The notes under the pieces: generated by a model | What the model was told of the DNA's origin: nothing | Seen by the model: the letters and a program-made list of their open reading frames with translations, nothing else | Databases searched by the model: none | Origin: Paragordius varius | Taxonomy: Eukaryota; Animalia; Nematomorpha | NCBI GenBank assembly: GCA_964247055.1 | Contig: OZ176051.1 | Span: forward strand, 10,912,001 to 10,976,000 | Direction of reading: 5' to 3' | Length of the DNA stretch: 64,000 nucleotides | Program-made: the position numbers and the translations under genes | Shown here: piece after piece, positions 21,322 through 60,019 of the stretch | Layout of the letters: every line of letters starts with the position of its first letter | How positions within the stretch are numbered: position 1 is the first letter of the stretch

Positions 21322-24300
21322 GGTGTTCTTCCCACAAAGTTTTAATAAACCATTTACTTACGAACTTAACAATTTTACAATTAACGGTTTAAATTTTTAA
21401 AGCGATTTAAAATACGATTTTTTAGTGTGACGTTTCTAATGATGTATACTTTATTTACTTCACAAAAAAAAGGAAGAGAAATTAAAAAATTTCATTTTGC
21501 AAACCAATATTAATATATACTAATGCTTAAGTAATATATTTTGTTTTCATTTTATATTCAGGTATGATACGAGAAGAGTATGTTGAAACATATGGACAGA
21601 TTGATTATCATTACCCCAATGAAACTGAGATAACCACCAGTATATATTATAATTTGTAACGAGACATATTAAATAATAAGACCAGATATTTTGAACTTGG
21701 ACGCAGTACAAAATTAAAACATACTTTGCCTGTTTTTAGACCATCGTGTGGTATATTATACAGTTTCCGCAAAATATACTGATGTAATATAAATATTCTG
21801 ATAGGAAAATATCAGAATTATCATGGTACTTTTGGTTTTAACCTTTACGAATTAAAGAAAGTTATTTACACTTTTGTGGTACTCCCATAAAATTGCATAA
21901 GGTGCGCATATTTTAGAAATATATTTTTTGGTGAAAGCTAAATGCTTTATTTTAAAAAATATCACTAAAATATAACATAAATAATAAAAAATTTTAAATT
22001 TTTAGATGTGGGCTCCGAAAGTCCCAAATTTTTGGCTCTTTTAAAATGGAATGTTCTCTCAAAATAAACGCAAAAATTCCGACATTGTGCAATAATTTTA
22101 ATATACTAAATTTTCATATCAACTAAATATATTTTTTAAAAAATACACACTTTGAAAAATTTAATTGTTAGCAAAATTTTGTTGAAGCATACTTCATATT
22201 ATTTTGAGCATAATGGAAACTATATAAACGGTTGAGATGTTATACTATTTATAATTCTAATTCTCAATCAAAATTTTGATTAAAGTATTCGTTCGTTTTC
22301 AAATTTTAGTTAAATAAAAATTGTGTTTTTTTAAAAAATTCACCATAATTTGCAAGCTAACAAATCTTAAAATTAAAATTCTAAACCTATAGTAATGTTT
22401 AATAAAAACGAATTATTAAAAAAAATGAATTTCATGCTTCAAAATCGTTAGAAGTACGCTTCAACAAAATATCTCAAATTTGTTTATGCAAAAAAACAAG
22501 AAAACTTATAAAAATGAAAGTTTAAGAAAAAAATTAAGTATTCTCACACCTCCCACTTAATGAGCATAGAAAACGTAAAAACTCTTAATTTTTTAATAAT
22601 AAAAGGTTATTTCGACATCATATGCCATATATAATAAATTTTATATAATATGTTACGCGAATAGTATTCTATAGAATTTTCCGTTTGATAATTATAACAA
22701 AAAATGAACTTTCTAAACTTAACATTTTTTAAAATATAATAAATTAATTTTGCTAATTTTTAAATTTTGAGGCACTTCTTTTTGCGGACTGAGTGAAAGA
22801 GCCAATAGCCTGAATCTTATGATGTGGAGTCCAAGATTTATAGTTTCGTCACTGCGCGAAAGGCTGCAATCCTAAGTTTGTATAATTAAGAAGAAAATAA
22901 AATATTAACCCCAATAGGTAAGGTGATCAGACGTCCCGCTTTTTCACACTTTGTCCCGCGTCCCGTTACGGTTTTGAAATGTCCCGCTTTTTCACGATCA
23001 TAAAAAAAATTGTTTTTTGAAATACATTTTTATATAAAAATTTATTTTTTTATCCGTTTTAACTTTTTATAATTAATTATCTTTTATATCTATATCAATT
23101 TTAAATTAAAATTTTTTAAAATTAAAAATATTTATTTTTTTCGAATTTAAATCATATGATTATACACTTTGTTCCTACTCCTACTGCAACATTATCAAAA
23201 AGACAAATTAATACCACAAATCGGTAGCTTATTTACTCCAGAAAATTAAGGTAATATAACATTTTTATACTAATATTAGCAATATGAGTATAAAAAGAGG
23301 TTGTAAATTCAACGATGAATTAATAAAAGAATTTCCTTTTATCAAACGAAGAATAAATCATTTTTAAATGTTCTTTGTGCTGGGGGAATTCACCCTAGCA
23401 CATGGCGGCAAGCATGATATTACAAAGCATATGGAAGCACAGTAACATAAAAAATGTTTAGATATGGCGGAATCCTCTTACAAAAGGAAGGATTTTTATC
23501 GAAAAACCGCTTTTGGAGAGGAAGAATAGAATTCGGCACTACCCGAAGGCGTTTTATCTTTCCACGCCGTTAATCACAATCTATCCTTTAGATCTATGGA
23601 TTTTACCTCACAGGTTATTCGTACCTTATTTAATAAAAAATTACGTGTGCCCGTACAAAATCTAAAGCCATTGTATGCAATGTCCTTTCGCCACATGCAT
23701 TTGCTCAAATACAAAAAGATTTGCTGAAAATCAATTTCATATCGCTATACTCTGATGCATCAAATCAAAAGGAAACAAAATTATTTCCCACTTTAATAAG
23801 ATATTTTGATCCAACCGGAGTAAAAATTAAAATTTTCGATTTTATTTCTCTACCCGGTAAAAATTCAGACATAATTTTTACTTCAATAATAAACATTCTA
23901 GAAAAAAATAATTTAAAAGACAAAAACATCGCATATTGCGCTGACAACACCAAAACGAACTTCGGTGGAAAAGTAAGGAGGGAAACGAAATTTTTTTTCC
24001 CTAAATTAGCAGATAATCTTAATCAATACATTATTGGCGTTGGGTGTGCAGCGTATATAATACACAACACTATTCAAACAGCGGATTTGTTACGCCTAGA
24101 TGAGAAAAATGTAGTTTTTAAAATTATATATACACGGTACGCTTTGAAACGCTTAAGGAATTGCAGAAGTTCAATATCAAAAAAAGCTTGGATTAAAACT
24201 CGTTGGTTAGCTCTGCCAGCTATCTAAAGAATTTAAAAATGTATGATCCTTTAAATCCTATTTTTTATCACAGGGCAAATGCCTTACAACTGAAAAATTT

Positions 24301-27300
24301 TTTGAAAGTCATTCTTTAAAAATATGGTTAGAGTTCCTACATAATTTAACTTCTCTCTTTCAAAATGTTATAAAACTGATAGAAGGTGACAAAATTTCGG
24401 CAATCGAAGTAGCCAATGAACTTAGTAACCTAAAATTCCAATGTCAAGAAAGGTTAGAAAATAATTTTATAAGATTATTTAGAAGCGATTCAATGAAATT
24501 GCTCATTTTCATTGGATAACATTTAAACCAGAATTTAATTGGTGCGATGTTTAAAAATCATTTGATTACATCTGCATCTCCCAAAAATTCCCAAAACGTA
24601 ATCTTTCAGAAAATGATTTTTTTTTAGGTATCATTAGTTAAAAAATATTAATAATGAAAAACTTAAATTATGGACAACAGAAAAAAAATACAGTAGAAAA
24701 GAAATGGTTTGAAATATTTCATCATTTTGAAACAAACTATGTTCCACACAATAATATTTTAAAAATTGGCACTATTTTTACCTGGAACCAACACTGCTAC
24801 TGAGCGCGTTTTTTCCACAGTAAATCAGGTGTGGACATCGGTCAAATTTAAATGTTGAAACTTTAAAGGCCATTTTATCTGTCAAATATAATTTGCCAAA
24901 TTCTTGTGAAGACTTCTACAATATTTTAAAAAATGATGACAATCTGCTAAACGCAAATCAAATAAAAAATATACCAAAAAATGAATAATATTTTACATTT
25001 ATAATGTATTTGTTTTAAAAATAAATCAATATTACAATAAATTTTTGTTTAATTTTTGGTTGTACACCCTCCCCCATGCCCTTCCCCCTTTTCTTTGTCC
25101 CGCTTTTTCGGTCAAAATATCTGGTCACCTTACTAATAGGCAATCTTTGTTTTTTACCGCAAAAAAACCATTTCTTCACAAATTATGGGGTTGTTTTTAC
25201 TGAGACTATATTAAATTTTAAAATCATTTTTTTGAATAAATGAAAGGTAATTAATATATATTTATTAAATTAAATTTTTCCTAATTTCAAAAACCAGTAC
25301 AAAAGGGAGCGCAGCACTGGCGCAGTTTTTTTCTGAAAACCCACAACTGCACTGCGAAAAACAGCCTATCTAATCACGTTAATATTAAATTTTGATAATG
25401 ATTTCAATAATTTTAGATAGAATCAATAGAAAGCTAAAATAATGAAAAGGTATATTAGATATAGACCATGTATTATAGCTTTGCCTAGTGGTATTTAAGG
25501 AATAACAGCCTAATGAAATATAAACCTAAAAAATTAGTTAATTATTAATATGAGATTAGATAAAATCTTAGGATGTATTATTTTGATAAGTTTAGAAGTT
25601 AAAATAATCCAAAAAAATGAATCATAGTTTCAGATAATAAACTTTGACGTTTGTGTTTTTAAATTCAGATACTAAAATCACTCGGAACAATCGGATGTAG
25701 TTGAAATTGAAACGAAAGGATCAATTATTTTATTTAACCAAAATTTATTTAACAGTTTTTAGTTTAAAATAACCTAAACTTTGGCATTCAATAAATGGAG
25801 GATATCTTTCCTTACATTCATTCGCAAATATTTTTAGACTATATTACACTGTGTGCAAAAAAATGTTTAAAAAAAATTTTTTTATCATGAGATAGCATGA
25901 CCAGCGTATTCATTTGCCGCTAAAATATTTATTTGTTGACTAGTGTTTGAAATATTTAGAGAAAATCAATCGGGAAAAAAGTGAAAAACAAGGATAATTC
26001 AAAAAATAATGATAAAATTTGAGATATTATAGTTTATTATCATTTTAGGATATATTTACAATATTTAAAAATCTTAAAGTTAGGTTTCTATTTCAGCTCA
26101 AAAGATGGCGTTTTCCTTTTCACACACACAAAAGACAAAACATTTATAATGAAACTATGTTAAAATATTTTTTTTAATTATTCACTACCTAAACTCACTA
26201 TTAAAATCTTAACATTCATATTTTATCAGTAAAAAAAAATTATAATTTATTTTCATCTTTTTATCATCTGGTTTATAAGTGTATAAAAAATTTATACTGT
26301 TTTGCTTTGGAATCTTATATGAGTTGGAATTATAAAGTATAATTTATACAAAATCGGATTTAAAGGTAGTGGAATATTAACCAACAATCCGTACAAATTT
26401 TAATAAAAATATTTTGTTTTAAAACAGATTTGTTACAGGGATTTGTAAGGATTGTTGTAGATATTCCACTATTTTTAAATCCTATTTTGCATAAATTATA
26501 TACTTAATAATACCCACTCATGTAAGATTTGGAAATAAAACAGTAAAATTTTTTTATAATAAACCAGACGACAAAAAAATGCAAAAATAAGAAACAATAT
26601 TTTTTCGTTTTATTTTAATATATAAGTTTTTTTTACCAAATATATGAATGTTAAGATTTTAACACTTGGATACAACACACTCATTTTAGTCCTTCGATTC
26701 AAATTGGGTAGTTGGATACCCCAGGCCTGTTTAAATCATATACTTTAAAAAGTATAGAAGGAATCGAAACCATGGCAAAACTTTGCACATATATAACATT
26801 AATAAACGTAAATATATAAAAAATTTTATTCAAAATTATTTGATACTACATATTTTAAGCTAAAACCGAAAAGATTTCGCCAACGTGACATGTCTCAAGT
26901 TGTAAAATTAAAAAATAATACAAAATAAACCGCTTTTTCTATTTCTATCAATGTTAGATGTAATTTATATTATAAATTAGTTTTACCCTTAAAATTAAAT
27001 GAAGACGATATTTTGCAAAAATTTTGTAAAACAAAAATGGCGTCGAAGTAGTTTGAGATGGAACTTTTTTTTCAAAACAAAATTTTATCAAGATATTTTG
27101 GCATATTTATATAATTTTTATCAGAATAGAAGCATAAATAATTGGAACCGTTTTCAGGAGTTTTTTAAAAATCCTAACTTAAATTTAATCTGGGGTATTT
27201 AGATACCCCAATTTGATTAAAAGTGTTAATATTGAGTTTAGGTAGTAAATATTATAAAAAAATATTTTAATATAATTTAGTGACTACCTATTTTAATGTA

Positions 27301-30300
27301 TCCAAAAAAGGCCTTCTTTTTAGCTGAAATTTTATAGAAACCCTAATATGATTTTAGGTTATTTATATATTGAACTATATCCTAAAATGATAATAAACCA
27401 TAATATCTCAAATTTTATCATATTTTTTTGAATTATCCTTAATCACTTTTTTCCAGATTTTGATTTTCCTTCAACGTTTCAAAAACTAGGTTGTCAACAA
27501 ATAATATTTTTTGCGGCAAATAAATTCGCTGGTCATAAGTTATCTCATGAAAAAATTTTTTTTGTAAATTAATCCTCTTTTTTGCACACAGTGTTATACT
27601 CATTTCCTTATTTGACCCTATATTTTGGATAATCTTTAATTTTTCATACATTTGACGCCATATGGCTAATAAATACCCCAAAAAGTATTGAATTATAATG
27701 AAAGCAAGTGAAAAAACATTAAACTTCAAGCCAATAATTCAGCGTTATTGTATCCTAAATATAAATTTGAGTTTATATTAAAATTTTACCTATATGCCTT
27801 GAAATACGCCTCATATTTTACACATTTCTATTCTTTTATCTAATGATCTCTAAAAATAATCTTTTAGGCTTGTGCAATTTGGAACAAAATAATCAATTCC
27901 ATTCTCTGAACATAATTTACAGACAACCCAGGTATTTATAAAAATTATAAATGAGTTTAATTAACTTGTTATTTTGTTCACCTGCACCAAATCAAAATTT
28001 AATAGATCGTATGTTTCGAAATGCAAATATAAAAGTTGGAATCATTTCGGCAAAATTGAATGACAAAATTTATTGACATCTTTTAGTAATATTTTATCAC
28101 TTCAAAAACTAATTATAAAATATACCTTTAAAATGCTTAAAAAATGTAATTTTATGAATATTTCCAAATATTTTAATATTTTTTATTATTTAATCTATGA
28201 GAGTTTATCTTCTTTTTAATTTTGAATTTTATCGGGTTTTTGTTAATGAAAGATTTAATTTGTCCTATTACTAAAAGAAAACATCAACATCAAAAAAAAA
28301 TTTATGAATAATTCCAAATATTATAATATTTTTTATTATTTAATCTATGAGTATTTATCTTCTTTTTGATTTTGGAAATTTTTATCGGATTTTTGTTATG
28401 TGAAGATTTAAATATTTGTCCTATTACTAAAAGAAAACATCAACATCAGTTAAAAAAAATTTAATATTTATCTAAATTTTATCAATTTATTCCATAAAAA
28501 TTTATTGATTTAATTTTTTTATAAAAAATTGAGTCCAAAATATATAAATTAACGCTCCATATGATTCTCATAGTAAAAGCTTTTGCGAGATTTTTCTGTC
28601 ACTAGATATTAACGCTATATTTCACAAAATTGATTAGTTCTGTCCCTTAATGATAGTATCCATAGGCACTCACACGGTTATTATTTTTGACCGATCAAAG
28701 TTTGAACATTAAAGGCTAATTAACCATCCTTAATATTATAATAAATCTTAGGCAAGACAGCGAAGCTTCTTGATTTATTTTATACTAGCTTAAATCTCGT
28801 GCTGCTAAGCAGCCCGAGATTTGGGGGGCTGTTTGAAAAAAGGGACAATAAAATGATCCATAAATGTGGATTATATCGAAACATTATTTAATAGATAATT
28901 TCATAGGATTTTCAAAATGGTGCATTCATATTAATATATTGTTTACTGGTGTAAAGGCCCCAAATTGACGGCTAACGGAAAAAACTGCTATACTATAATT
29001 TTAACCTTTTTATGGGTAATATTCAAAGCTTTTATCGATCTCGTATGGCTTCTTATGTTTTTTGAAAATTAGCTCCAAAGCCACGCCATTTTTGTATGGT
29101 GTCTCAGTTATAAACCGGTAGACCTCTACCCATAGGCCTATATGGAAAAAGCGTAAAGTTAAATTTTTTGCCTTTATAGGGAAAATATTTGGAATCATTG
29201 GAGACCATCGTCTCATGGGTTATTCGAAAAAATACCTCAACGATGGCGTATTTTCAGTGCATAAAGGCCCCAAATTAACGGCTAATATGAAAAGACCTTA
29301 CCTTAATTTTTACCTAGTTACGGGTAATATTTCGAACTTTAAATGAGCTCATATGGCATAAGTCTTTAAATTAGTTCCAAAACAACGCATGCAGTTTTTG
29401 TCCGGTAGCTTCTTACCCAGAGGCAGGTATAAAAACGCGTCGGGCAAAATTTTTGTTTTTATATGGGGAATATCTGGAATTATAATGTCTATATGTTCCT
29501 ATTGGAAATATTGCTTCAATTTAAACAATTGTATGCCGGCGAATTTTTCAGGCGTAAAACTTTTCTTAGCGACTCATTGAAATAGCCCTCTATACTAAAA
29601 TATTTGTAAGGGGTAATAAATATTTTAGGCCCTTATTGAACTCACATAGTCTCATAGGTTTTCTGAAATTTTGCTCCAAAGGCATGCTATATCGATATAG
29701 TGACGCATTTTTACACGGGTAGCCTTCTTCCCAGAAACCAATGTAAAAAAGACGCTAGATAATATTTGTTGCCTTATGGGAATACCTGAAATCATCATTC
29801 ATTCCATATGTTCTTCATAGTTTATGGAAGAATGGCTTTTATACAAATAATTGTTCAATGATGGCGCATTTAGGGCGTAAAGGGCCTATTTAAGCGCTTT
29901 TAAAAAAACCGCTCGACTTAAATTTTTGCTTTCTTACAGGTAATATTTCAGGCCCTTATAAAACTTACATGGCCTGATAACTCTTCTAATTAATTCCTAA
30001 AACGCAATTTCGATATGGTGTCGCAGTTTTAGGCGGGTAGCTCCCTACCCAGAGGCTGATATAAAAAAGCGCTTGATTAAAATTTTTTCCTTTTTACGGA
30101 GAATACCTGGAATCATGATTGATTCCATATGCTCTCATTAGTTTTGGAAAAATTGCCTTTAAATTAAAATATCATTCTAGGTGGCGCATTTTCTCAGGGC
30201 GTGAAGGGCCTAATAAACGGCTAATTTAAAACGCACGTTATTTTTCCATTTTTACGGGTAATATTTTAAGCAGCTATTGAACTCATATGGCCTGGTAGGT

Positions 30301-31514
30301 TTTCTGAAAAGCCCCAAAAGCACGCTATTTCGATTTGACGGGTCAGTTTTTATCGTGTATCTCCTTACCCAGCAGCTTTCATCAAAGAAAGGCTTGACTA
30401 AAATTTTTGCCTTTTAACAGGGATTACCTGGAATTTATATTGAATTTTTACGGTCTAATACTTTGGGCGAAAAATAGATTCAAAAAGTTATTTTTGTGGA
30501 CTTTGTTTTCAAAAAAATAGCAATTTACGGGGGGAGCGGGTAAAAAGAGGGCCTATATTAAAAAAGCGTGCCGACTATGTTCGGCGCAATCAAAAATAAG
30601 TGCATATTTGAAATGGAATGTTCCAACAGTTTTCCGAAAAATTGTCTCAAAAACACGATTTTTGTGCTGTTTATTAAAAAAACCCGTTTTTTACGCGGGG
30701 TGGGCCCGAACTGGGGGCTTAATTCAAAAAAAGAGCAAAGCTATTGTCGGGGCAATTAATGATTTTTTCGATATTTGGACTTGAATGGGTTTACCGGTTT
30801 TCCGGAAAAAGATCACAAAGCCACCACTTTCCATTTTTATAAATATATAGTTCATGTATTATGTTTTAAACAAATTCTTAATCCTTATTTATCTCCGATA
30901 CGGTTAAAATCCACCCTTAAAGCATTTTGATTTTGCATATAAAAGCGTTTCAAATAAAAATAATTGTATATTGTAATTATGTTTATAGGAATTAATTTAG
31001 TTTACATGTTTGCAAAAACATATTGTTGGATTTATTTTAATTTGTTGATATTTTTCCATAAAGTTTTTAACTTGAGATCTATTATAATATGTTAGATAAA
31101 AATGATATTTACAGTTTTATAACTAGTGTCTAAAACTTATATCTACAGTATGTTTAATGGTTGCTTATTTCACACTATAGTTGGGCAATTTTCTACACAG
31201 TCGTGTATGGTAAAAACAACAAAATGTAGTATAAACAATTATCTACTTTCGTTTTTCCACACGCTACTGTGTTGCAAATTACCCAACTATAGTTTGTAAA
31301 ATGTATACTGTAATAAAGATATATTATAATTCCTTGTTTTAGTAAACCCCCGACATTCAATTATTATGCTTATATCCATCGACATCCAAACGGAGAAGTG
31401 GAATGGATCATGAGAACAAAAAAATTAAATTTATCAGACAATTTGTACACTTACGTGCCCCAAGATGAAAATGAATATGCAAATTATCTCGCTTCATTGC
31501 AACATGGCTCGAAG
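21322..31514 (+). CDS. Unrecognised multi-exon coding unit D (5' end unresolved)
   Basis: Phase-consistent exons 21322-21386 (VFFPQSFNKPFTYELNNFTING), 21562-21639 (MIREEYVETYGQIDYHYPNETEITT), 27868-27931 (LCNLEQNNQFHSLNIIYRQP) and 31343-31514 (KPPTFNYYAYIHRHPNGEVEWIMRTKKLNLSDNLYTYVPQDENEYANYLASLQHGSK). Two of these have paralogues at 54167 and 56392. Confidence 0.7.
21674..25381. mobile_element. Non-autonomous hAT element interrupted by a nested hAT
   Basis: Degenerate TIR TAATAAGACCAGATA...TATCTAATCACGTTA with a perfect 8-bp TSD ATATTAAA (21666-21673 and 25382-25389). The body aligns with 47240-48695. Confidence 0.85.
22919..25132 (+). mobile_element. hAT (Tip100/Zaphod-like termini) with decayed transposase
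   Basis: TIR TAAGGTGATCAGA / TCTGGTCACCTTA and TSD CCAATAGG / CTAATAGG. Remnants include a BED-finger-like CSLC...HGGKHDITKH, DASNQK, CADNTKTNFG, GVGCAAYIIHN, KTRWL and the C-terminal PGTNTATERVFS dimerisation motif. Many stops and frameshifts. Confidence 0.9.
25847..27593. mobile_element. Near-palindromic non-autonomous element with CACTG...CAGTG ends (CACTA/EnSpm-like)
   Basis: CACTGTGTGCAAAA ... TTTTGCACACAGTG flanked by TTA on both sides. The arms are inverted up to a centre at ~26360-26470. A second copy lies at 52249-53419. Confidence 0.7.
26663..27225. mobile_element. TTAA-flanked MITE nested in the right arm of the CACTG element
   Basis: TTAA|CACTTGG ... AAGTG|TTAA. It is absent from the 52.2-53.4 kb copy of the host element. 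Confidence 0.75.
28151..28448. repeat. About 150-bp tandem duplication
   Basis: TTTATGAATA...CTATTACTAAAAGAAAACATCAACATC occurs twice in succession. Confidence 0.85.
28785..30850 (-). mobile_element. Non-autonomous Helitron-like element with internal ~310-bp tandem repeats
   Basis: On the minus strand: 5' CTATATATTTATAAAAATGG and a 3' stem AAATCTCGGGCTGC-TTA-GCAGCACGAGATTT followed by CTAG|T. Repeat units begin near 28955, 29262, 29555, 29876 and 30200. Confidence 0.65.
31171..31296. mobile_element. Small MITE
   Basis: ACTATAGTTGGGCAATTTTCTACACAGT is inverted to ACTGTGTTGCAAATTACCCAACTATAGT. Confidence 0.6.
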
Positions 31515-31564
31515 GTATTTTTTAAAATAAAAAATCAAAATTATAAAAAAACATGAAACCTGCA

Positions 31565-33001
31565 TTTATATATTAATAAAAATGGAAAGTGGTGGCTTTG
31601 TGATCTGTTTCCGGAAAACCGGTAGACCCATTTAAATCCAAATGTCGAAAAAATATAATCATTAATGAATGCCCCGACAATAGCTTCGCCCTTTTTTTTG
31701 AATTGCCCCCAGTTCGGGCCCACCCGTGTAAAAACGGGTTTTTTTGGAAACATAAGTCCACAAAAATTGTTTTGAGACAAATTTCCGGAAAACGTGTTGG
31801 ACCATTCGATTTTTGATATCATTTATTTTTACTTTTTTTCGATAGCGCCCAACATATTGAGCTCGTTTTTTTAATTAAGGCCCTCTTTTGACCCGCTCCC
31901 CCTCGCGAAATGGCATTATCATCTAAAAACCAAGTCCACAAAAATAATTTTTTGAGTCTATTTTTCGCCCAAAGTATGGAACCGTAAAAATACGATGAGT
32001 ATTCCGGTACTATCTGCTTAAAGGCAAAAATTTTAGTCAAGCGTTTCTTTGATGATAGCTGATGGGTAGAGCCGCCTAAAACTGCGCCACCATATCGAAA
32101 TTACGTTGCTTAGGATTTAATTTTCAAAAAAACTTATCAGGCTACATAAGTTTGATAAGGCTGAAATATTACCCGTAAAAAAACAAAAATTAAGTTAAGC
32201 GGTTTTTTTAAAATTGACCGTTAATTGGCTCTTTACGCCCTTAAAAATTTACTATCATTGAACATTATTTAGCATTCTTCCAAAAACTATTAAGAACATA
32301 AAGAATGAATGATGATTTCAGGTATTCCCCTATAAAGGCATAATTTTTTATCAAACCTTTTTATATTAGCCCCTGGGTAGGGGTATACCCGCCTACAACT
32401 GTCCATCATATCGATACATCGTGACTTTGGAGGCAAATTTAAGAAAACTTATCAGGTATCAAAGATGATTCCGAATATTTGCCCTATAAAGGCAAAAAGT
32501 TTACGCAGCGCTTTTCCATATAGGTCTATGGGAAGGGGTTTACCAGTTTAAAACTGAGTCGCCATACAAAAATGGCGTGGTTTGGGAGCCTATTTTCAAA
32601 AACTTAAGAAGTCATACGAGTTCAGTTAAACACATTTTTGGGGAATATGGATAATATCATTATTTCCTTTAAAAAGTGACCACAAATTACTTTTTATAAC
32701 CCTTGATCCCTATGTGAACAGAATTTCAAAATGAAACTTTTAACCATGATTTCGTAAAACGAAAATCTTAAAATAAATCCAATGATAGTTAAATATAATT
32801 GATAAGTGACAGTTTAAATATGGTCAATTTCGAGAAACAATATTTGAGCCTATGCAAAAACCCGTAAAAGAATAATTAAAGACAATCTTTTTATTGAATA
32901 TGTTTTTTATTATGTTTGTATCTCCATTACCTCTATATATTCCAAATTATTAAGAATAATTATCGATGATACCTCACAGCGAAGCGTGACAGGGCCGCTA
33001 G
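31565..33001 (+). mobile_element. Second Helitron-like copy in opposite orientation
   Basis: 31565-~32640 is the reverse complement of the left copy. 5' A|TTTATATATTAATAAAAATGG and 3' GCGAAGCGTGACAGGGCCG-CTAG|T, a Helitron-type terminus. Confidence 0.65.
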
Positions 33002-33195
33002 TTATCACTAAAATAAATATATATGATACAATAATAAATAAATAAATGAAGCGACTATACATTAATTAGTCTATTTTTTCCCTATTTGTTTTTTTAAATT
33101 ATTGTAAAATAACAAAATCCATTATATAATCCTACATCTTATATTATATTTTTCAAAATATATTCATGAATAGGAACCATTTTGACCATAATTAG

Positions 33196-35507
33196 GTGTG
33201 TTTAAAAATTTTATGTGCAAAGAAGCCAAATATACATTAATATACTCGAACATTTCGATCAAACATGTATGTTAAAAATATATTAAAAATAGGTTTATCT
33301 AAGCATAAGGCAGGATGATTTCGCTAACATCTATTATTTGTGCACAAACAATACCCTAGCAAATTTAAGTGAATGCTTTAACTTTCATTCTCTCCCTCGC
33401 CTCATCGATTCCAACCCTATTAAAGTATTCATTACATTATATTGATAATTATTTTATTTAATCACGGGCGATCAAAACTTTAAAATATATGGGGATTAAA
33501 AGTATTTAAAATGCATTTAAACTAATTTAAAAGTATAAATTTATAAATTTGGTGAGTAGCTAATATTAACAACTTAGTAAACTAAGATTATAAATCTTTA
33601 ACTACATTAAATCAAGCAAAAAATTTCAATCACACAATATAATGTTGCATAATGTGGGACATGGCTAAAAGAAAGCTTTAAAATTATTTGGATGAGTACA
33701 CTGAAAACTTAAACAATTTTTTTCGTTATAATCAATATATATAGTATTATTTTTAAAGCTTATATAACGCTTTATTCAAAATAATCCGGTTATTAAAGCG
33801 ATCAGTAACTCAAGTTTTTATTAAAACCATCATATAAAATGTTTGATATAATTTTAATGTAAATTATATTTTAATAATTATTTTTTATTAAGTTATAATT
33901 TTAAACACATTTAAAGGGTTAAATTGTATTTGAAGCGTTTAAAAATTTTTGTTCGCTCGCAATTCTAAACCAAGAAAATAAATTATTATATCCAAAATAT
34001 CAAGTTTTATCATTTCATTTTTTGCTTTTATGGCATTAATAAGCCAATGATTTACATGTATTAAGTCTTTCAACCTTACAGAGAGAATGAACCTTAATAT
34101 ATTTACTTGGATATTTATTTGTGATAGATCTTGTTTCTCATAAAACCTGATTATACAGTTATGGCCTATTATTATTATTATGATGAAAGGAATCGACATT
34201 CCTATTCTATTTACCGACACGTAAAAAATTTTACAAAACCTCCCTGCAATGTTAATGATCGTATAATTTATCCAGTTTTTATTAGGGCAACACCGGGGCT
34301 TAATATACATAATAATAAGACCAAGAGATACACGGAAGCAAATTTTCACTACTATGTAATATTAAGTTCTTGCTACAGAAAATCAGGTATTAAAATTTAA
34401 ATTTTTTTGATTATTAAAATCTAATTAAGTTATTAAATATTTTGAAATCATGTGACATATTGGGATATCCCTAAAGCCGTTTGATAAAATATTATCTGTT
34501 AGGAATCAACATTCATACAATTACAAAAGTTTGCATTTGTATAACATTGATGATCCGAAATAGACTAAAACTTATTATTACTTATTTTATGGACATACCT
34601 CAATTTGGTCAAAATGACATGTGAGCTTCAGCTATATATGAAAAATATTCAGAATTATCTGTTATATCATTGTTAGATGTGATTATATTAAATTTTAGCA
34701 TGAGAATTAAATAAAACTTTATTTATAATTTAAAATTAGCATCGAAGTAATTTGATATGGAACTTTTTATACTAAATTTTATTTAAATATTTTGGTTGTT
34801 TTATATAATTTTATTAGAAGAAAAGCATAAATTTAAATTGGAATCGTTTGTTTTAGTTTTTAAAATATAAACCTAAATAGTCAGGGACCCTAGATTACCC
34901 AATTCGAATCGAAGTTTATATAGATATTAACTAACTTGCTCTTTCTGTTTAGTGTAAAATTCGTATTTACTCATTAACAGATTGTAATTTTTAATATTTA
35001 ATTAATTATTTAACCTAAATTCGTTAGCTGAAAAAACGAGTTTTATTATAAAGGAATTAGAGGCCCTCACAACAAAGATTCGAGCGTTTGATATATAATT
35101 TTTAGTCGCATAAAATTGCGAACAAAGATAATAGTCTTAAGGGTATATAATTATATATAGCAGCAAAATCGTATGATATAAAGGAAAATTTTAAGCTTTT
35201 TAATCATTTGACTTTATTTAATATGTGTAAAATGATACTTTAGAAAATGGATTAATGGATTATACACGGTTTTTGAATGCAGGTATGATATTGTCTTTAA
35301 AATGAATTTGTTTACAGAATCCTACCTGGACTTAAATGATGATTTATGTGAATTTTCACTTAAAGCTGGAATATATAATGTTAAAGAAAAAACCTTAAGA
35401 AATACTGTACGCTTCTTAAGGTAATGAATTTTCTTTATAAAAATTAGGGTCACATTATATAAAATTTTATTAGATGTTTTAAATACCCATTATCATCTAA
35501 AATATGA
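33196..35507 (+). CDS. Unrecognised multi-exon coding unit A (possibly the C-terminal half of unit D)
   Basis: Exons 33196-33266 (tentative), 33293-33424 (VYLSIRQDDFANIYYLCTNNTLANLSECFNFHSLPRLIDSNPIK), 34128-34386 (ILFLIKPDY...NDRIIYPVF...FHYYVILSSCYRKS), 35244-35282 (ENGLMDYTRFLNA), 35318-35420 and 35474-35507 (TGA). Phases are consistent, and three exons have paralogues at 58.5-59.9 kb. Confidence 0.7.
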
Positions 35508-38152: not shown

Positions 38153-39633
38153 TTAATATAAACTTTCCCACCATTTTTGAATCTTCTCCTTAATTAATGG
38201 GATTACATTCCTTAAAACTAAGCCGTAATAAGATGCAGTATTCTTCTTTGCACATTTAGTTTCTACATCTTGCAGCGTACGAAACATAGTTTTATATTTA
38301 TATTGAAATTGAGTCAACGAGGATTTCGCAACCTCTAACGCTGGACTTTTATGATCTTGGCTGTAGTTTATTATAATAGTTGGGTCATTCGCACCATCCA
38401 AACCGTATGTTTTGTTTATATGTATGTAAGCACCGTACCCAGGTCTCTTCGGACAAGGATAATTAAGGATGGTCAGAAAGGCACATATAGTGTGATCATG
38501 ACATCCCATACCAATAACCTTATCATCATAATTCTTATTAGTTAGGAATTGGTTGAGTCGAGTCATGAAATACCCCAAAAGGCTGACTTGCAGTTTATCG
38601 TTATTTTGAATGGCATACTTAAACATATTATCTACAACCTTATCTAAAGCTTGAACCTTGCCAGAATCGGATGTCCATTCGGGTAAAGCCAAAGTGGAAT
38701 CATTGATTAGGGATTGCAAAGTTGCTTTTTCACGATTGGCTTCTTTTGCATCGTAATATTCATTCTCGTTATTTTGTTCATTTTTTTGGCCCTTAAGTGG
38801 AGGTGCGACATAAGCTCTATCAATTAATGCCTTAATGCATTGGATATAATCGGTTAAATAATACAGCTCTGCTATATCGAATAAACTGTTCGTAAAAAAT
38901 GACTTATGATATACTGCTTGCCAAATCTGATTTATTATAACTGAGTTGTTTAATAAACTTTGATTGAAATTTGGATTCGAAAGTAAATTTTCCACAACAT
39001 CAAATTTAAAGTTTTTACACGTTTCAGCTGCGCTAAGGAACAAGTCGGCATTAGTATCTTTTTGAATTATATTTCCGTTTGATTGAATGTAGTTTATAAA
39101 ACTCTTATGTCCGCCACGCATATCTAAAAGTCCAAAATTAAAAGCAAGCGTCGATTCTATACTTCTTTGAGCCGGGCTTGAGTATAGAATAACGTTATCC
39201 GCTTTGACATGACTTAAATGGCGATTCCTAATATAGCGCCCAACTTTTCTCAATTGATAAGCTCCATGCTCAGTTAACTGTCCAATACCTCGGGGGAAAA
39301 TTTTATCATGAACAGATTGACCAATGGTTACGTCTATTGTTTTTTCATACGCCCTTTCACCGTGCCGTAATAAAATTATTGATAAATCTATCACATATAT
39401 ATATAAATATATATATACATATATATATATATATAAACCGATGTTGTAGTATTAATGAAATAATTAAAATCGCTCAAATTAACTTCAAAAAGTAATTAAG
39501 TTTTAAATTAATGACTAAATGTTAGTATATTACGATAATTAATATAATAATTAAATTATTTTTAATTAGTTATTAAATTACCTTTTCCATAAACGCCCAC
39601 AATTAGGATCCATAAGATTAAAAAATTATTCAT
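38153..39633 (-). CDS. Secreted histidine acid phosphatase (branch-2, acid phosphatase-like), 2 exons, 428 aa
   Basis: Exon 1 39633-39582 encodes signal peptide MNNFLILWILIVGVYGK with a phase-1 GTAA donor. Exon 2 is 39387-38153. Motifs RHGER, GQLT..G, the conserved Arg in QRSIES, LPEW, HD (GCHDHT) and PGYGA. Confidence 0.9.
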
Positions 39634-46900: not shown

Positions 46901-49246
46901 ATTTTGATTACAAATATCTGCAAATGTGTCGAACAACTATGAAATTTTTTATTATATGGTGCACGGCCTTTCTTGTGAAATATTTTTTTGCGGCTCTGCT
47001 AAAATTTTCGGTAAGGACCGCTGATATATGTATATTTTCCACACAATTCGTGCAGAAATATGCTTATGTAGACCGAGTTTTTGATTTAAATTTTTTTATA
47101 TCCGAATCATGTGAGTTGATGTTTATGGCCCTATTTGGGCTTGAACCTTTTTGGACATAAAAAATCTTTGCACAAAACTGAGTTGATAATATTACTGCAT
47201 CGAATATAAAATATAATATATATATATATATATATATATTAATGTGACCAGATATTTTGAACTTTGACCCAGTACAATATTAAAACATACATTGCCTGTT
47301 TTTACAACATCGGTGTGGTATATTACACAGTTTCCACAAAAAATATCCTGATGAAAAATATATATTCTGATAGGAAAATATCAAGATAATCATGGTGCTT
47401 TTGATTTTAACCTTTACGAGTTATTAAAGAAAGTTATTTACACTTTTGTGGTAGGTGCTCCGTATAAAATTGCAAACGGTGCGCAATTTTTTCAAATATT
47501 AAATGATTTATTTCAAAAAATATCATTAAAATAAATTATCTGCAAATAAAAAGCAAAATATTATTTGTAAAATTTTTGAATTGTTAGATGTGGTCTCTGA
47601 AAGTCCCAAATTTTTTGGCTTTAATGGATTGTTCTCTTAAAGAAAACACAAAAATTCCGATATTGTGCAATAATTTTAAATATATGCTAAATATCAACTA
47701 AATATATTTTTAAATAAATGTATACTTTCAAAAATTTAATTTTTAACAAAATTTTGTTAAGCGTTTGACATGTTATAACACTTTATATATATATAATTCG
47801 ATAATGCTATGCGTTTTTCTCACTCAGAATTAATGTGTTTTTTTATAAATTCACCAAAATTTGCAAGCAAACAAACCTAATTCTCAACCTTCAACATCAT
47901 TTTAGAAAAAGGGTTTTATTATATCTTAAAGCATTATATCGTTTTCATCATGCTTCAAAACAGTTTGAAATATGCTTCAACAAAATATCTCAAATTTGTT
48001 TATGCAAAAAATAAGAAAACAAAAAAAATAAAGTTAAAAAATAAATTAAGAAATATCATACCCCCAACTAATGAGTATAGAAACGTAAATAACTCTTTTT
48101 TTAATACGAAAACAGGTTATTTCGAATTCATGTGCCATATAATAAATTTTAGATAATATATGGGAATACAATTTTCTATATAATTTTCCGTTTGATAATT
48201 ATAACAAAGAATGAACTATTTAAACATCAAACATTTATGAAAATATCATAAATTAATGTTGGTATTAAATTTTAAGGCACCTCTTTTTGCGGAAGCCCTG
48301 AGTAAAAGAGCCATTAGCCTGAAACTTACGGTGTGAGATTTATCGTTCAGCCTAGCGCGAAAGGCTGCAATCATAAGCGGTTTTACCGATTTAAATCCCA
48401 ATTTTATGTATATTTCGAGCAGAAAGTAAAATATTAACAAATTAAAAAACAGGCCAATCTTAGTTTTTTACCTAAAAATAAACCATTATTTTACAAATTA
48501 TGGGGTTATTTTACAGAGGTACTAATTGAATTCTAAAATAATTTTTTTGAATAAATAAAGGTAATTAATATCTAATTATAAAAATTTAATTTTTTTTAAT
48601 TTCAAAAAGCAGTACAAAAGTGGGCGCAGTACAGGCGCAGTTTTTTTTGAAAACTTAGTACTGTACTGCGAAAAACAGCCTATCTGGTCACATTAATATA
48701 TATATATATATACTTATATTAGGTTTTTCGATACAAATCATGTGATACTTTTTATGTCGAGTTTATACCATTTTAAGCGATATTTTGTATAAACTCTCTA
48801 TGTATAAAAAATATAAATAGCTAAACAAAATATTTTCTTACCGTATGAATTTTTTGATTCAACTTTGACGATACACGGCGATTTTTATATTTTAAAAGCT
48901 TTTCAGGGATCTTAGAATATGTAGAATCCTACTCAATAACTTCTGTTAAAGATTATTATGATATATACAACAAATTAATTTTTATTATTTCCGCTATTTA
49001 TTATCGACCTAATGTGCGATAAAAATGTTATTTTTTGGATATAACTTAAAAATAAAACAATTTTTAGACTTTAACCGATTTATTTCGATATTCCTCATCC
49101 TGAAGCTTTTGACTATCGAATGATATAAGATTTTTACGCAGTCGTTTTTCGACCTTCATTTTCACACAGCGTAATACGCTTGATTCGGGCTAATCAAACC
49201 TTATTGAAACCAAATATTTTAACGATACTTAGTAAATAATGTTAAA

Positions 49247-49297
<51 letters not shown>

Positions 49298-52248: not shown

Positions 52249-53419
52249 CAGTTTGTGCAAAATTTTTCATGAGATAACTTATGACCAGCGTATTCATTTG
52301 CCGCAAAAATTTTTATTTGTTGACAACCTAGTTTTTAAAATATAGAGAGAAAATAGAAAAAGTGAAAATTAAGGATAATTAAGTATAATTCAAAAAATTA
52401 TGATAAAATTTGAAATATTATGGTTTATTATCATTTTAGGAATTTTTAATATATAAATAGCCTAAAATCATATAGTTTGGGTTTCTATAAAAGTTCAGGT
52501 CAAAAGATGGCGTTTTTCTTTTATCACACTTAAAAGACAAATAAAATTTTATGAAACTATATTAAGATAATTTTTTTTAATTATTTACTTCCTAAACTCA
52601 CTATTAAAATCTTATCATTCATATTTTATTAGGTAAAATATACTTTTAAATCAAAATAAAACCAAAAATATTGTTTTTTTATTTTTGCATTTTTTTGTCA
52701 TCTGATTTATGACTATATAAAAAATTTATACTGTTTTATTTTGGATTCTTACATGATTAGGCATTATTAAGTAATGTAAAATAAGATTTAAAAGTAATGG
52801 AATATCAACCAACAGTCCTTACAATTTTCTGTAACAAGTCTGTTTTATGACAAATTAATATTTGTATTGGGATTTGTACAGATTGTTGGTTGATATTCCA
52901 CTAATTTTCAATCCTATTTTGCATAAATTATATGCTTAATAATTCCCACTCATTTAAAAATCCAGATGACAAAAAAATGCAAAAATAAAAAACAATATTT
53001 TTGGTTTTATGTTGAGTTTATTTTTCTGAATAAAATATGAATGTTAAGATTTTGATATAAAAAAAATTATTTTAATATAGTTTCATTAATTTTTTTTGTC
53101 TTTTAAGTGTGAAAAAAGGAAAACGCCATCTTTTGACCTGAAATTTATAGAAACCCAAACTATATGACTTTAGGCTATTTATATATTAAAAATATCTCCT
53201 AAAATGATAATAAACCATAATATTTCAAATTTTATTATAATTTTTGAATTATACTTAAATATCCTTAATATTCACTTTTTAATAGATTTCGATTTTTTCT
53301 CAATATTTCAAAAACTAGGTTGTCAACAAATAAATTGCGGCAAATGATTACCCTATAAGCTATCTCATGAAAAAAAATTTTTTCGTTAAATCAAAATGAC
53401 CCTCTTTTTTGCACACAAT
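52249..53419. mobile_element. About 1.17-kb near-perfect palindromic element, same family as 25847-27593
   Basis: The arms are reverse complements almost to the centre (GGAATATCAACCAACA / TGTTGGTTGATATTCC). Termini are eroded. Confidence 0.8.
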
Positions 53420-54166
53420 ATATATACTTATATCGTCGGAGTTTATATACGTGTTATGCCCATTTTTATCCATTTTCATTCAAAAACACTATATATTATG
53501 TTTTCTTTGGTTAAAAAGTGTTAAGTTCAAATATAGTTATATACGCTTTAAAACTGATCAAACAAGTTACATTTTACCCTAATAAATAAATTTAACTGTT
53601 TTCGACAAAAATATTTGTTATTTATGACTACTCACCTCGTCTTATGACCGGATTAACCTCACAAAACGCACACTCTAATCACAAGTATGGATTAGTGAAA
53701 TTATATTAAAAGCATATCAACTTTATCTAAAAGCATGAAATTTAAATAATATTGTTCTTATAAATTAAATAGGTAATATGCTATGTAAAAATATTTTGCA
53801 AGTAAATATATTTTATCACAGGAAATATATTGTTTTGATTTTTTGTAACGATTAGTAGTCGGCCAGCTTGGTGTCGAATATTTTATAATGTACTAATATA
53901 TTAAAAAAATTAAAATAGAGTCTGAAGGCATTTAAACGGCTCATGCGTATAACCAATCAAGTTTCAGTATATCCTAATATTATAGCATAGCTATATTAAA
54001 AGATACTTATATGTCCCATAATTTATAAATTGTTCAATATTGAGACATAATGTAATTAAACGTAAGTTTAGATAATATAAAATAAAATTTTATTATAATG
54101 ATTTAATATAATTGATATTATTATTTAATTAGAGAATATTTTTTATATTAAATTATAAAATCAAAG

Positions 54167-56560
54167 GAATGATCAGCGATGAATATATCGAAAGATTTGG
54201 CTCGGTTCCGCGACCAAGGAGCTCGCCATCCTCAAGTAATTTTACTATTACATATATATCATTAACGGCTATTGCTGCTTACTGTTTCTTTTTTTTTAAT
54301 TTACTCAGTATATGTAAAAAATTCTGATTTCATTCAGCAATGTCTCAAAAACAATTAATTTAGGTTTAATCGTGAAACAATGTTTTATTATTTATCTCTA
54401 TATTAATTTAAGGATAATATTTTGTTTATACGATTCAATAATTTTGGCATATGATGGGTGATTTATACTAATATATGTTTTTGCCCTAGATTGTGTTGAC
54501 AATTAAGATCACTGTCAGCTCTGGGCAAGCTTACGAGCCCTTAAGACAATGTGACATTTGATTATTTTTTAAAGTAGTTATCAGACCTTGTTTTCTGTAA
54601 AATAATACAATGATTAAATATGCAATAATTTAATGATGGAAAAGAAAAATGTAAATAACCTCAAAAAAATATGTTTACCTAATCAATGCCCCAAATCATC
54701 ACATTTCAAAGGAAAAAATAAACGAGATGTAGTCATAAATTTTACCGGTCAAACAGGTAAGTTTTAAAAAAAATCAATTGTTTTTATACAAAAGATTGTA
54801 CTTTGGCTTCTACACCATTTGCCCATCTCTCATTAATGTATGCTGTGCCAGATGGTTGTCATGCGGGAAACCATTATTCAAGCTATCCAAAGTCTTTAAA
54901 ATTATTAAAGTGTTATGATGAGAGGTTGAGTCTCGTTGATACAAAGTTGTATATTAGGGAAGTGGTTTCAATGTGTCTTTAAACGATTTTGCTGTGTTAG
55001 ACTCTAGTAAATCCTTTCTATGTCCTCCCCAATCCTGTCATTTTTTATGCATAGTTTAATCTTGGAATAACGGTTTTTCCGGGTTTTAGACGTTTATAAT
55101 ACACAATACGGCTTGGCCACCAGACGCAGAGCATGGTCTTTTTGCCGAAAAGCGATGTGGCCTTGGTGTAGATGGACTGGCTTGACATGAACAAAAGTCA
55201 TTTCTCATCACCGGCCTGAATTTGATGCAAAAAAGATTTCTTTTTAGAAGCAGGATTTCACAAGTTTTGCGGTTTTTGATTCAAGACGCTTATTCAAATT
55301 GTGTGGAACTTATTTACCTATTATTGGTCATTCCAATTGCTCAAAAACTGATTGTATTTTACGATACATGTTGCCAATTGTTGTTGAGTTTGAGTCCTAT
55401 CTCCTAAAAACTAGTGTTCTTTAGCATCTTTGGAGGTCTATCAGGAGGCCCACACACTTTCACATGAAATCACAACTTTTAATATTTTGAAAGCTTTGTT
55501 CACTATATGTTTCTACCAATAAATGTCAACAACAATAGTTTTTGGTTCTGACGGCAAAGCCGCAAATGTTTTTTTTCTGGGACGAAATTCGACATACTAA
55601 CTGAATGATAAAAACAAGACGCTAATTTATAGCAAACTCATCTTAAATATGTTTGTGGTTTAATATCACATGAACAAAATAGGCATCAAATTGGTCGCTA
55701 ATCTTCTTTAAGCTGAAACGGTATTTATTTATAGTCAAACCTGGTATATATCAAATTAAAAGTTAAAAATTATTAAGCGCATGTATACAAGATGTTTAAT
55801 CTTTATGTTAGTAAAACCAAAGATTTTAATGTATTTATAAATTTATAAAATTCGTTTGTATAAAGGGATATGCAACGTGGAAAACAATCAATTCCAGGAT
55901 CTAAATTACTTATATAACCAACCTAGGTTGTATATAATTTTATATTTAATTAGGGCAATATATTAAACGGTTGCCGCTTTTACCAACGGTTTAATTTCGT
56001 CGCGTTATAAAATAATCATATGTACCAGAAATTATTTCTTTATGTTTAAAATCATATCTTTTATGACAGATATTTGCATGTTAACATCAAAGTTAGCCAT
56101 TAAACATAAATTAATTTTCAAATGATTTTTGCTCCATAGCATAGCTATAAAATGAAATATGTAAAATTTTTTAATTCCTAAAATTAAATTAAAAGTTTAT
56201 TCACAACTCTACTACTGCATCAAGAGCGAAACATTGCCATAAACATTAGTGGTTGTAAAAAAATGCACCTGAAGGAAGTTTAATTTTTAATAGCCGTTTT
56301 TTGGAATTAACCTAAGAGTCATTATAAACTATTTTCATGAAAAAGCGGATGTTTGATATAATGTTTTACTACTCTTTTTAACAAACGGTAGAAATGGAAA
56401 TTTTACCACCCAAGCCTATTTAAGAAGATCAACTACAGGGGAAATATTTTGGGTTATGAGAACTACCAAGATACATCTGATACAGCCATTTTATACATAT
56501 TATGTCGTTAACCAAACTAAATATAAGAGCTATCTTCAAACTCTTTCCTATGGAACTAAA
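54167..56560 (+). CDS. Coding unit E, paralogue of D (intervening exon unresolved, possibly pseudogenised)
   Basis: 54167-54235 GMISDEYIERFG matches GMIREEYVETYG (both phase 1-1). 56392-56560 AYLRRSTTGEIFWVMRTTKIHL...YTY...YKSYLQTLSYGTK matches AYIHRHPNGEVEWIMRTKKLNL...YTY...YANYLASLQHGSK (both phase 2-0). Confidence 0.7.
54790..55700 (-). mobile_element. Mariner transposase remnant
   Basis: Minus strand reads AGDEK*LLF and KKTMLCVWWPSRIVYYKRLKPGKT. Heavily disrupted. Confidence 0.75.
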
Positions 56561-56686
56561 GTATGCTGCATTTATGCTACTTTGCATCAAATACACTAAA
56601 ATTATTTTCATTATTAGTGTATAAAGAGTGACATATATATTTTTGGAATTAACAATAAAAAATCCAATATTGGTTAGATATATATA

Positions 56687-56965
56687 CCATTTACAATTCA
56701 AATTCACCCTTGAATAATTTAATTTCAGTCTTGAACCAAATTCACCCTAAAAATAAATTATATTCGATAATATAACTCATCATTAAAAAGAATATTCTTA
56801 TGGCATAACTTATTATTTTTTTGGTATTATATTAATTTTAAATGTAATTTTATTTCTTATAAATATAAAAAAATATAGGTAATTTTCAATCCTAAGAAAT
56901 AAATAATATTTGAATTGTTCAAGGCTGAATTAGATTGTTTAAGGGTGAATTTGAACTGTAAATGG
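56687..56965. mobile_element. TA-flanked MITE, CCATTTACAATTCAAATTCACC TIR
   Basis: TA|CCATTTACAATTC...GAACTGTAAATGG|TA with internal repeats of TTCAAATTCACCC. A related copy lies at ~63590-63881. Confidence 0.8.
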
Positions 56966-57359
56966 TATATCTTACCATTCATAATAAAATAATGTCAGTT
57001 TAAACTATAGGTTTAGCAAGTATATTTAGGATTTAGTGTTTGTTCTAGTATAATATTTTTTTTATTTTAAAGAGAAAAAATTGATTTATAATTTTTTGTT
57101 GATTAGTTTTACAGTATTAAAAAATGGTTAACTTATTATTCATTATGTTAAAAACTAGTAAATAAATCATAGTAAAATACTGTATTTCCGTAGATTTTTT
57201 TTGAGCATAAATAAATATGGATTATTTATTTAACAGAATTTATTTTATAACTTATTGTACAGTGTACGTGTTTTCGGGGCGTTGATAAAATTATATGTCG
57301 GACACATGTATCAGATGGTGCTTTTTGTTTGGGTCTTAGGAGTCATTTAATAAAATATC

Positions 57360-57859
57360 CCATTTGCACTTCAAGAGTGTCCTTGAACACTTCAAGTTGG
57401 TCCTTTGACCTTTTTGTTTTGTTTACAACTTTTATCAATCAAATCGTGTATTATCCATTTATTCAATTAACCTATTTTCTATTATTTAACATAATCAAAT
57501 CAATATCAACTTTTAATCATGAGAAACAGTATATCTTTATTAATTTCTTAAAATTATTTTGGATCTTTAGATAATATAAGTAATTAAAAAATATATAAGT
57601 TTTCTGGGTTATTAATTACAATTTTATATTGAAAACTTAAAAGTTAATTATTTTGTTTAATTGAAATTACAAAAAGTGGTTATTGAATATAATTTTTATT
57701 TTTAAATAAATAAATAAAGAAAATTAGGTTAAAAATTAATAAAATAAAAAAATACATGCAAAAATTATGGTTAAATCAAAATTTAAAAATTTTAAGGACC
57801 AACTTGAGGTATTTAAGGACCAACTTGGAATATCAATGAACACCTTGAAGTGCAAATGG
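57360..57859. mobile_element. MITE with CCATTTGCACTTCAAG TIR
   Basis: CCATTTGCACTTCAAG...CTTGAAGTGCAAATGG|TA with subterminal ~21-bp AAGGACCAACTTG repeats. Confidence 0.75.
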
Positions 57860-58465
57860 TATATTTAACTTTTCTCGTAATGGTCCATATCGAAAAATCG
57901 CAAATTTAGTGCATATTATGCTAAATAAAAATTTTTGGTTAAAGCTTTGTTTTATTCCAATATTATTTTAATATAAATTAAATTTAAAAAACAATTCCAT
58001 ACAGTATTTAAATGTAGGCTCAGAATTTCAAAATTATTGATCTAAAATAGGCGTTATTGCACATTTTTAGCAATATAAAAATGTGTTTTATAAAAAAGTT
58101 AATAGCATTATCCTTATATCAAAATCTAGTAAAATATCGCGCAATCTCGGCATTCTTGGGTTTAGTTTAAGAAAACTAGCTATAATAATAGGTGCCCTAA
58201 TCTAAAAATATAAAATTTAAAATAATGCTTAGCTTTTTGAGTTTTTTGACATATTTTATAGGTATTTCAGAATAAAGCATTAAGTTTTAGCCAAAATATT
58301 TAACATAGTGTGCGCTAATTATATTATTTTTCTCTTTAAATGACTCGTAAGGAACAGCATCATGAGGATTCTGATACATTTATCTTAAATTAAAAATATA
58401 TTGCATCCGGATTTTTTTGTAAGCACTGTTTATACAAATAATCATAAAATAAAACACCTATATAG

Positions 58466-59903
58466 GTAATGGTGGAAATTAAGTCATACCAATATGCAAC
58501 ACTCTCTTATCTATGTACAAACATTACATTGTCTCGACTGAGTAAATGTTTCAATTTCACTGCATATTATTACAATGTACTGGCTACTAAGGAAATGCCA
58601 AAAAAAGTATATAAAATAGGGATCAGTTAACTACATAAAAATTACAAAGTTTTTTAGGGGAAACTTTTATGTATTATCTATTTTCATTCAGGTTTATTGT
58701 TAAATGACTCCCTCTTTTAAACAATACAACATTTTTTCGTCTGAAAAAAATTCATTCAACCTGACAGTGTATGAGTGTTTTCAGGGAAAAGAAAATTGAT
58801 TTAAATATTTATCGATTATGTTCTAGATTATTTTACTGTAAATTCAACAAATTTAAAAAATACCTTTTTCATTGATTTTAATAAATTTATAATATTGATT
58901 CAAAAAGAGGAATCTAAAATAATAACATCGATCTCTGCATTTAATCTAAATGTAATTTACAATAAAACCATTAATGTAATTTACAATAAAACCGACCAGG
59001 AAGTTTTTAATGAGAAAATATTCATGAAACTTGAAAACACTTTTATGGCCAAATCTTAAAACAATTATGAAAGGCCTTTAACTATTTTTTTATCTAAAAG
59101 CTAGAATTAGAAAAATGTTACAGGTATATAATTCCTTAAATTATAATATCATTAATTAGGCAGCATATTTTCGTTATTTAGTGTTTTGAGCATAGCCATT
59201 TATATATATCGAATTTGTAATTTAATTATAACTCGTTGTTTATCGTTACTTTCATATAAATATAGAAATATAAGATAGTTTTAAATTGATCACAAAAGCC
59301 TTACTATAATATAAATAAACTGACAAAAACGATCCCAAAATACACAAAATTTTTTAATTAAATTAACGATTAAATACCTATTTCTAGGGTTTTGTCAATA
59401 CTACATGCCTTTACTTCATAAATTGTTTTTACTTTTGAAATTATTTTTGGAATAATTAATATATGGCAAAATGACTGAACTAATATATATTTTGGTGGCA
59501 TAAGTTAATATAAATTAAAATTATATGAATATCAAATACATCATTAATTTAGATCCGTATCATGTTTGCCACAAACAGTGCTCATGCTTCAATCATAACT
59601 TTTGCCTATTATGATGATAATAAAAGAAATTCCTCATATTCCCTTGTTAACAGTATAGGAACCATTGAGAATGTTGGACGCTATAACCCTGATAAAATAA
59701 TTTATCCCGTATTTAAAGAAATTGATAATAATGACAATGCATCTGAGATGTCAAATGAAAAATTTCATTACTATATAATCATGGACGGGTGCTATACGCA
59801 AGGTAAAAATAATCATTGTATGTTTTAAAATAAATTAAATTAACGCAATATTTGTTAGATGTGGACACAAATGTCAAAGATTTCACCCATATTCTTGATG
59901 CAG
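58466..59903 (+). CDS. Coding unit B, paralogue of A
   Basis: Exons 58466-58606 (YLCTNITLSRLSKCFNF), 59553-59802 (DKIIYPVF...FHYYIIMDGCYTQ) and 59859-59903 (VKDFTHILDA) have the same phases as in A. Likely stop at ~59941; 5' link unresolved. Confidence 0.72.
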
Positions 59904-60019
59904 GTATTTTAAATATATATATAATAGCTAATACAGTGTAATATAAATGTAATTGTGTTAAATTTTATCGCATTAACTATAATGTTTTTTTGTTAAAATA
60001 CACCTAATTTTGAAACAAT

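Follow-up and report, generated by a model that had tools for sequence, protein, structure and literature searches.

A probable pair of ancient seven-exon paralogues in the genome of the nematomorph Paragordius varius

Two sets of short open frames on a contig of the nematomorph Paragordius varius share a series of motifs rich in aromatic residues, and the locus raises the question of whether these frames belong to genes, to how many of them, and to what kind of protein. The stretch analysed, hereafter the window, covers 64,000 nucleotides (nt) of contig OZ176051.1 (G000:C2:10912001-10976000) in a genome of 110 Mb and 44 contigs, has a guanine plus cytosine (GC) content of 23-36% and contains spliceosomal introns and animal-type repeats. 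An original prediction, made from the letters of the window without database searches, had placed in it the duplicated blocks D-A and E-B of an unrecognised Tyr/Asn-rich protein family. Blocks D and A constitute one gene (gene A, 21564-35420) and blocks E and B a second (gene B, 54169-62887), which follows from their splice junctions, intron phases and exon-length differences. Both genes are on the + strand, with 19 kb between them, and each has seven conserved coding exons and a predicted product of ~280 residues. They are probably paralogous protein-coding genes with a compact, Tyr-rich product in which five Cys residues are invariant. The pair is an ordinary one, either lineage-restricted or diverged beyond recognition, and is neither a multi-gene system nor a transposon gene.

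A regular-expression scan in all six frames recovered each of the five motif pairs on which the blocks had been based, all on the + strand and at the places noted: GMI..EY.E..G at 21561-21596 and 54166-54201, the W.MRT.K core at 31404-31424 and 56450-56470, YLCTN..CFNF at 33335-33385 and 58508-58558, IIYPVF with FHYY..CY at 34263-34376 and 59697-59795, and D.T..L.A at 35258-35281 and 59879-59902. The blocks were also compared in translation and then, with higher sensitivity, segment by segment over every stretch free of stops, and two colinear exon pairs (27868-27931 with 55866-55926, and 35318-35420 with 62788-62887) come in addition to the five. Exon 1 of gene A (21564-21639, donor GTATAT) and of gene B (54169-54235) opens with an ATG, placed identically in the two copies and leading into a conserved acidic motif, and its end is in phase 1; this conserved ATG is the simplest start of the coding sequence. 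Exon 2 (gene A, 27868-27931; gene B, 55866-55926), which was absent from the original prediction, runs from phase 1 to phase 2 between AG and GT sites, contains the first conserved Cys and is 63% identical between the copies. The best-conserved block is exon 3 (31343-31514; 56392-56560), with the pattern GE..W.MRT.K...YTY, while exon 4 (33293-33424; 58466-58606) holds YLCTN.TL..LS.CFNF, with two conserved Cys residues and a conserved N-x-T, and is in phase 0 at both ends. Exon 5 (34128-34386; 59553-59802), the longest, contains YYD, IIYPVF and FHYY..CY and ends in phase 1. The short exon 6 (35244-35282; 59859-59903) contains D.T..L.A, is bounded by AG and GT and is in phase 1 on both sides; a micro-intron of 35 nt (35283-35317) follows it in gene A, and in gene B it is preceded by an intron of 56 nt and followed by one of 2884 nt. 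Exon 7 (35318-35420; 62788-62887), with the same phases and 32% identity in the two copies, ends in FLR in both. Its copy in gene B lies past the end of the region first outlined, 21322-59941; the blocks in that region stand, but the second gene extends to ~62.9 kb.

The exon boundaries were read from the DNA, and the final exon table was verified by script. All 12 internal junctions are formed by an AG acceptor and a GT donor, the donors being mostly GTAT or GTAA, and the six intron phases are identical in the two genes (1,2,0,0,1,1), as had been claimed for the motif-bearing exons. The seven exons differ in length between gene A and gene B by 9, 3, 3, -9, 9, -6 and 3 nt, all multiples of 3. 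The strength of the pairing was assessed against copy B peptides that had been reversed or shuffled and put through the same search, for which the best score was 21-30 bits. Exon 3 (31356-31517 against 56402-56563) reached 52.4 bits (E 4e-14, 38-41% identity), exon 5 (34155-34376 against 59589-59795) 44.7 bits (30% identity), exon 4 (33293-33385 against 58466-58558) 38.5 bits (41% identity) and exon 2 (27867-27932 against 55865-55927) 33.5 bits, so that these four pairs stand far above chance even in sequence of biased composition. Taken alone, the pairs of exon 1 (22.7 bits), exon 7 (23.1 bits) and exon 6 (four identities in 12 residues) are at chance level, and these three exons are supported by their colinearity, identical phases and AG/GT sites rather than by score.

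Conservation between the copies is confined to the protein level, in agreement with the original prediction: the exons share no DNA similarity, and the only sequences that match between the blocks as DNA are interspersed repeats, situated in introns or flanks. The two proteins are 36% identical over 264 aligned residues. With the counts of the individual exons added up, synonymous differences make up a proportion (pS) of 0.81, which is saturated, and the duplication is therefore ancient. The proportion of non-synonymous differences (pN) is 0.42, corresponding to a non-synonymous distance (dN) of ~0.61. A ratio of non-synonymous to synonymous distance (dN/dS) near 1 had been named in advance as an outcome that would speak against these being genes; what was found is a pN of 0.42 against a pS of 0.81, the classical dN/dS not being computable because the synonymous sites are saturated. 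The open frames, junctions, phases, pN/pS and the four pairs above the null are those of true coding genes on which purifying selection acts and, to judge from the sequences, keeps both copies open and spliceable. An old duplication with exon order and phase retained is thus upheld, in the form of a single gene present in two copies and not of the block-duplicated gene pair that had been offered as the other option.

All five Cys residues of copy B are conserved in copy A, as are 16 of 26 Tyr, 11 of 18 Leu, eight of 15 Phe and four of eight Gly residues. This concentration of conservation in Cys, Tyr, Leu, Phe and Gly is the pattern that a folded core would leave. The described richness in Tyr holds (9.5-11% against 6% in a neighbouring gene), whereas that in Asn (9-11% against 8%) is mostly the AT bias of the genome.

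The introns of the two genes have little in common beyond their positions and phases, measuring 6228, 3411, 1778, 703, 857 and 35 nt in gene A and 1630, 465, 1905, 946, 56 and 2884 nt in gene B, with a GC content of 27% against 33% in the exons. At 35283-35317 (35 nt), 35421-35447 (27 nt), 59803-59858 (56 nt) and 62888-62933 (46 nt) the introns or candidate introns are very short. The homologous partners of the 35-nt intron of gene A and the 56-nt intron of gene B are 2884 and 857 nt long, and introns within one gene family have therefore switched between the micro and the kilobase class. Since the duplication, different repeats have accumulated in the introns of the two copies. An interspersed repeat family with 74-82% DNA identity is represented at 25842-27606 in intron 1 of gene A, at 52259-53434 upstream of gene B and at 5414-6144. 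To this family the translated comparison owed most of its matches outside the exons. In gene A, exon 3 is flanked by inverted repeat copies (30010-30867 and 31548-32414) that are 76% identical over ~870 nt, with further copies at 28.9-30.4 kb; these are probably nested insertions in the two flanking introns. The repeats common to both blocks are 21641-22876 with 47205-48377, and 25.8-27.6 kb with 52.3-53.4 kb.

A search of the whole genome in six frames with the exon peptides and exon profiles, which supplies the copy count that the original prediction had called for, found only these two loci. Dispersed multiplication of the kind seen in mobile elements is thus not apparent, there being two loci and shared repeats that lie in the introns and flanks and not in the exons. 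Three candidate further copies were discarded. A weak match on contig C8 adjoins a mariner-type transposase, with no match to any other exon, and one on contig C5 is an isolated frame of 29 codons, likewise with no other exons; both were put down to chance. A partial copy at 47.2 kb was rejected as a repeat that lies inside intron 1, because the DNA match starts ~40 nt past exon 1.

The absence of a recognisable domain, as first reported, held in every collection consulted, the searches for relatives being run exon by exon with exon peptides or exon profiles. Eight exon frames gave no Pfam match over the cut-off, no PDB sequence matched below E 0.1, two exons gave no usable match in the ESM Atlas, and a word search with the exon 3 profile gave no candidate. 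The exon 5 profile, in a hidden Markov model (HMM) search of 1.84 billion representative proteins, had four matches, all of them spurious because the proteins concerned were tandem-repeat proteins matched in 4-8 stretches. Metagenome contigs contained no relatives, and a viral origin was set aside when none was found in viral contigs. An AlphaFold2 model of an exon 3 fragment (56 residues of copy B, with copy A in a two-row alignment) reached a predicted local distance difference test score (pLDDT) of 65 and showed a beta-hairpin (residues 4-26) and a helix (residues 41-52), while that of an exon 5 fragment consisted of strands with a pLDDT of 44 and is unreliable. Both fragment models are too poor for a fold search.

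How much weight these blanks can bear was gauged with a control, the intronless gene at 38156-39394 (- strand), which codes for a histidine phosphatase of 413 residues (His_Phos_2, E 9e-10) and serves as a yardstick for claims of "no homologue" in this genome. Several observations weigh against the view of genes A and B as a family of their own with the product proposed above, and two come from this control: it found no relative at E<=1e-5 in a word search of 5.8 billion proteins, and when it was cut into five pieces of ~83 residues only one, the piece with the catalytic motif, still matched Pfam. Exon-sized blanks are hence to be expected here even for known families, and the family is therefore to be called unrecognised and cannot be claimed as new. 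The remaining points concern the ends of the genes and the product. An acceptor-like AG|G directly precedes the ATG in both copies, with a good pyrimidine tract in gene A. The C-terminus has two options in each gene, namely a TAA right after FLR in the unspliced frame or a 27-nt intron and a short tail to ~35523 in gene A, and a 46-nt intron with a four-codon tail (stop at 62947-62949) or a read-through of 17 further codons in gene B, and the candidate tails are not conserved between the copies. The conservation pattern, moreover, is the only ground for any guess at function. The control lends some substance to the idea that the two genes are strongly diverged members of a known family, hidden by exon-wise searching in a lineage of very divergent proteins, since the histidine phosphatase itself had no word-search relatives and four of its five pieces went unmatched in Pfam. 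Set against this are the 14 exon peptides without any Pfam match over the cut-off, an exon 5 profile that retrieved only spurious tandem-repeat proteins, and scans for PF01841, PF00797 and PF13359 without a match in the window, and a diverged known family is accordingly regarded as unlikely, with a weight that is still appreciable.

The acceptor-like site bears on a further explanation, in which both genes code for secreted, disulfide-bonded N-glycoproteins with an undetected signal-peptide exon upstream of the apparent ATG. Because AG|G abuts the ATG, an upstream exon joined in phase 1 is possible; the site lies at the same place in both copies, and phase 1 is the usual intron phase after signal-peptide exons. 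Secretion would also suit the complete conservation of the Cys residues and the five to seven N-x-S/T sites per copy, one of which is conserved beside a conserved Cys. The two copies agree, however, on the codon of the ATG, and no signal peptide is visible from this start, since the stretch that follows is acidic and not hydrophobic. A conserved exon upstream of the ATG was looked for and not found, and a scan for leader-like exons gave only candidates that are unrelated between the copies and no better than expected in AT-rich DNA. Furthermore, the number of conserved Cys residues is odd, and the density of sequons is near that expected from the Asn-rich composition alone. This explanation is considered doubtful, if worth keeping in view. 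Domesticated or decaying transposase genes, of the Harbinger/PIF (HARBI1-like) type or from another mobile element, are very improbable. The comparison was suggested by the likeness of three motifs, exons 4, 5 and 7 resembling by eye the Harbinger transposase blocks of helix-turn-helix and DDE type, in a genome with more than 100 DDE_Tnp_4 fragments, and by a similar size of ~280-340 residues. It failed all three tests applied: none of the 108 genome-wide matches to PF13359 (DDE_Tnp_4) falls in the window, hhalign of three exon profiles with five of the genome's own Harbinger transposases gave probabilities below 0.2%, and the real exons scored no better against a local Harbinger HMM than 300 shuffles of each. 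Of the acidic catalytic positions, the first two would, in addition, not be conserved in both copies, and there are only two copies, with conserved introns like those of host genes. The stretching of copy A over 14 kb by repeats might suggest chance open frames or the remnants of a dead pseudogene, but seven colinear pairs whose frames are intact, whose splice sites are canonical, and which agree in phase and differ in length by multiples of 3, and the survival of 36% amino-acid identity at saturated synonymous sites, make this hardly credible.

If genes A and B are, as seems probable, functional paralogues, their product would be a folded alpha+beta domain with a core formed from the conserved Tyr, Phe, Leu and Cys residues, and the family would be either restricted to the lineage or a known one diverged beyond exon-wise detection. 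With low confidence, the conservation pattern points to a globular protein that acts on its own and owes its stability or its activity to the invariant Cys residues. With an unseen leader exon it would be a disulfide-stabilised secreted protein, and with the conserved ATG as the true start a cytosolic thiol-dependent or metal-binding protein, the odds between secreted and cytosolic being roughly even. Papain-like or transglutaminase-like enzymes were considered on account of a Cys in exon 4, a His on a predicted strand in exon 5 and an Asp in exon 6, all three conserved and with 14-18 residues between His and Asp, an order that would suit the layout of these enzymes and that is backed by no score. 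The distance from Cys to His is ~90 residues here, which differs from the presumably shorter spacing in those families. Neither Transglut_core (PF01841) nor arylamine N-acetyltransferase (PF00797) found profile support: a six-frame genome scan at E<=10 placed PF01841 at two loci, both of them outside the window, a test weakened by the split of the candidate Cys, His and Asp over three exons, and PF00797 matched nothing in the genome at the same threshold. A new, lineage-restricted protein domain family, possibly with a new fold, that acts as a thiol-dependent enzyme or a disulfide-locked secreted module could be suggested only tentatively, its likelihood ranging from low to an even chance according to what is counted as "new".

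The description of the locus as an undescribed system was too strong, given two genomic copies, no partner genes and a neighbour of known family that is equally without relatives by the same tools. On the present evidence the gene pair matters little in itself. Its use is as an annotated example of two paralogues whose introns, at homologous positions, measure anything between 35 nt and 6 kb, the short form having been kept in one copy and the other being filled with repeats, while the control result indicates that, in this lineage, novelty can hardly be judged from exon-wise searches that come back blank. Should the full-length fold turn out to be a new Cys-based domain, it would be of moderate interest for protein-family research.

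The genes around and between the two copies, comprising a lysyl hydroxylase, the opposite-strand histidine phosphatase and the remnant of a long interspersed nuclear element (LINE), are unrelated to them. The idea of one long gene with two modules was rejected, as exon 7 of gene A ends in phase 2, the acceptor of exon 1 of gene B would be in phase 1, and the opposite-strand gene lies between. The exons likewise do not form the downstream part of the lysyl hydroxylase (PLOD) gene, because the latter is complete (7516-17611, + strand), with its glycosyltransferase (GT) domain exons at 7570, 11860, 12664, 13148 and 13481 and its 2-oxoglutarate-oxygenase end running to a stop after 17611. Two motifs of its GT domain that are presumably nearly adjacent in other PLOD proteins are set apart here by ~135 Ser/Thr-rich residues carried in the open frame 11863-12471, and this stretch represents either inserted sequence or an intron that is open by chance. 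The LINE remnant (41484-43666, + strand) retains a weak Exo_endo_phos fragment and an RVT_1 fragment (E 7e-13) in several broken frames. A cluster of repeat copies in direct and inverted orientation at 0.7-5.4 kb encloses a weak mariner/Tc1-type DDE_3 fragment (3227-3589, + strand, E 1.6e-4).

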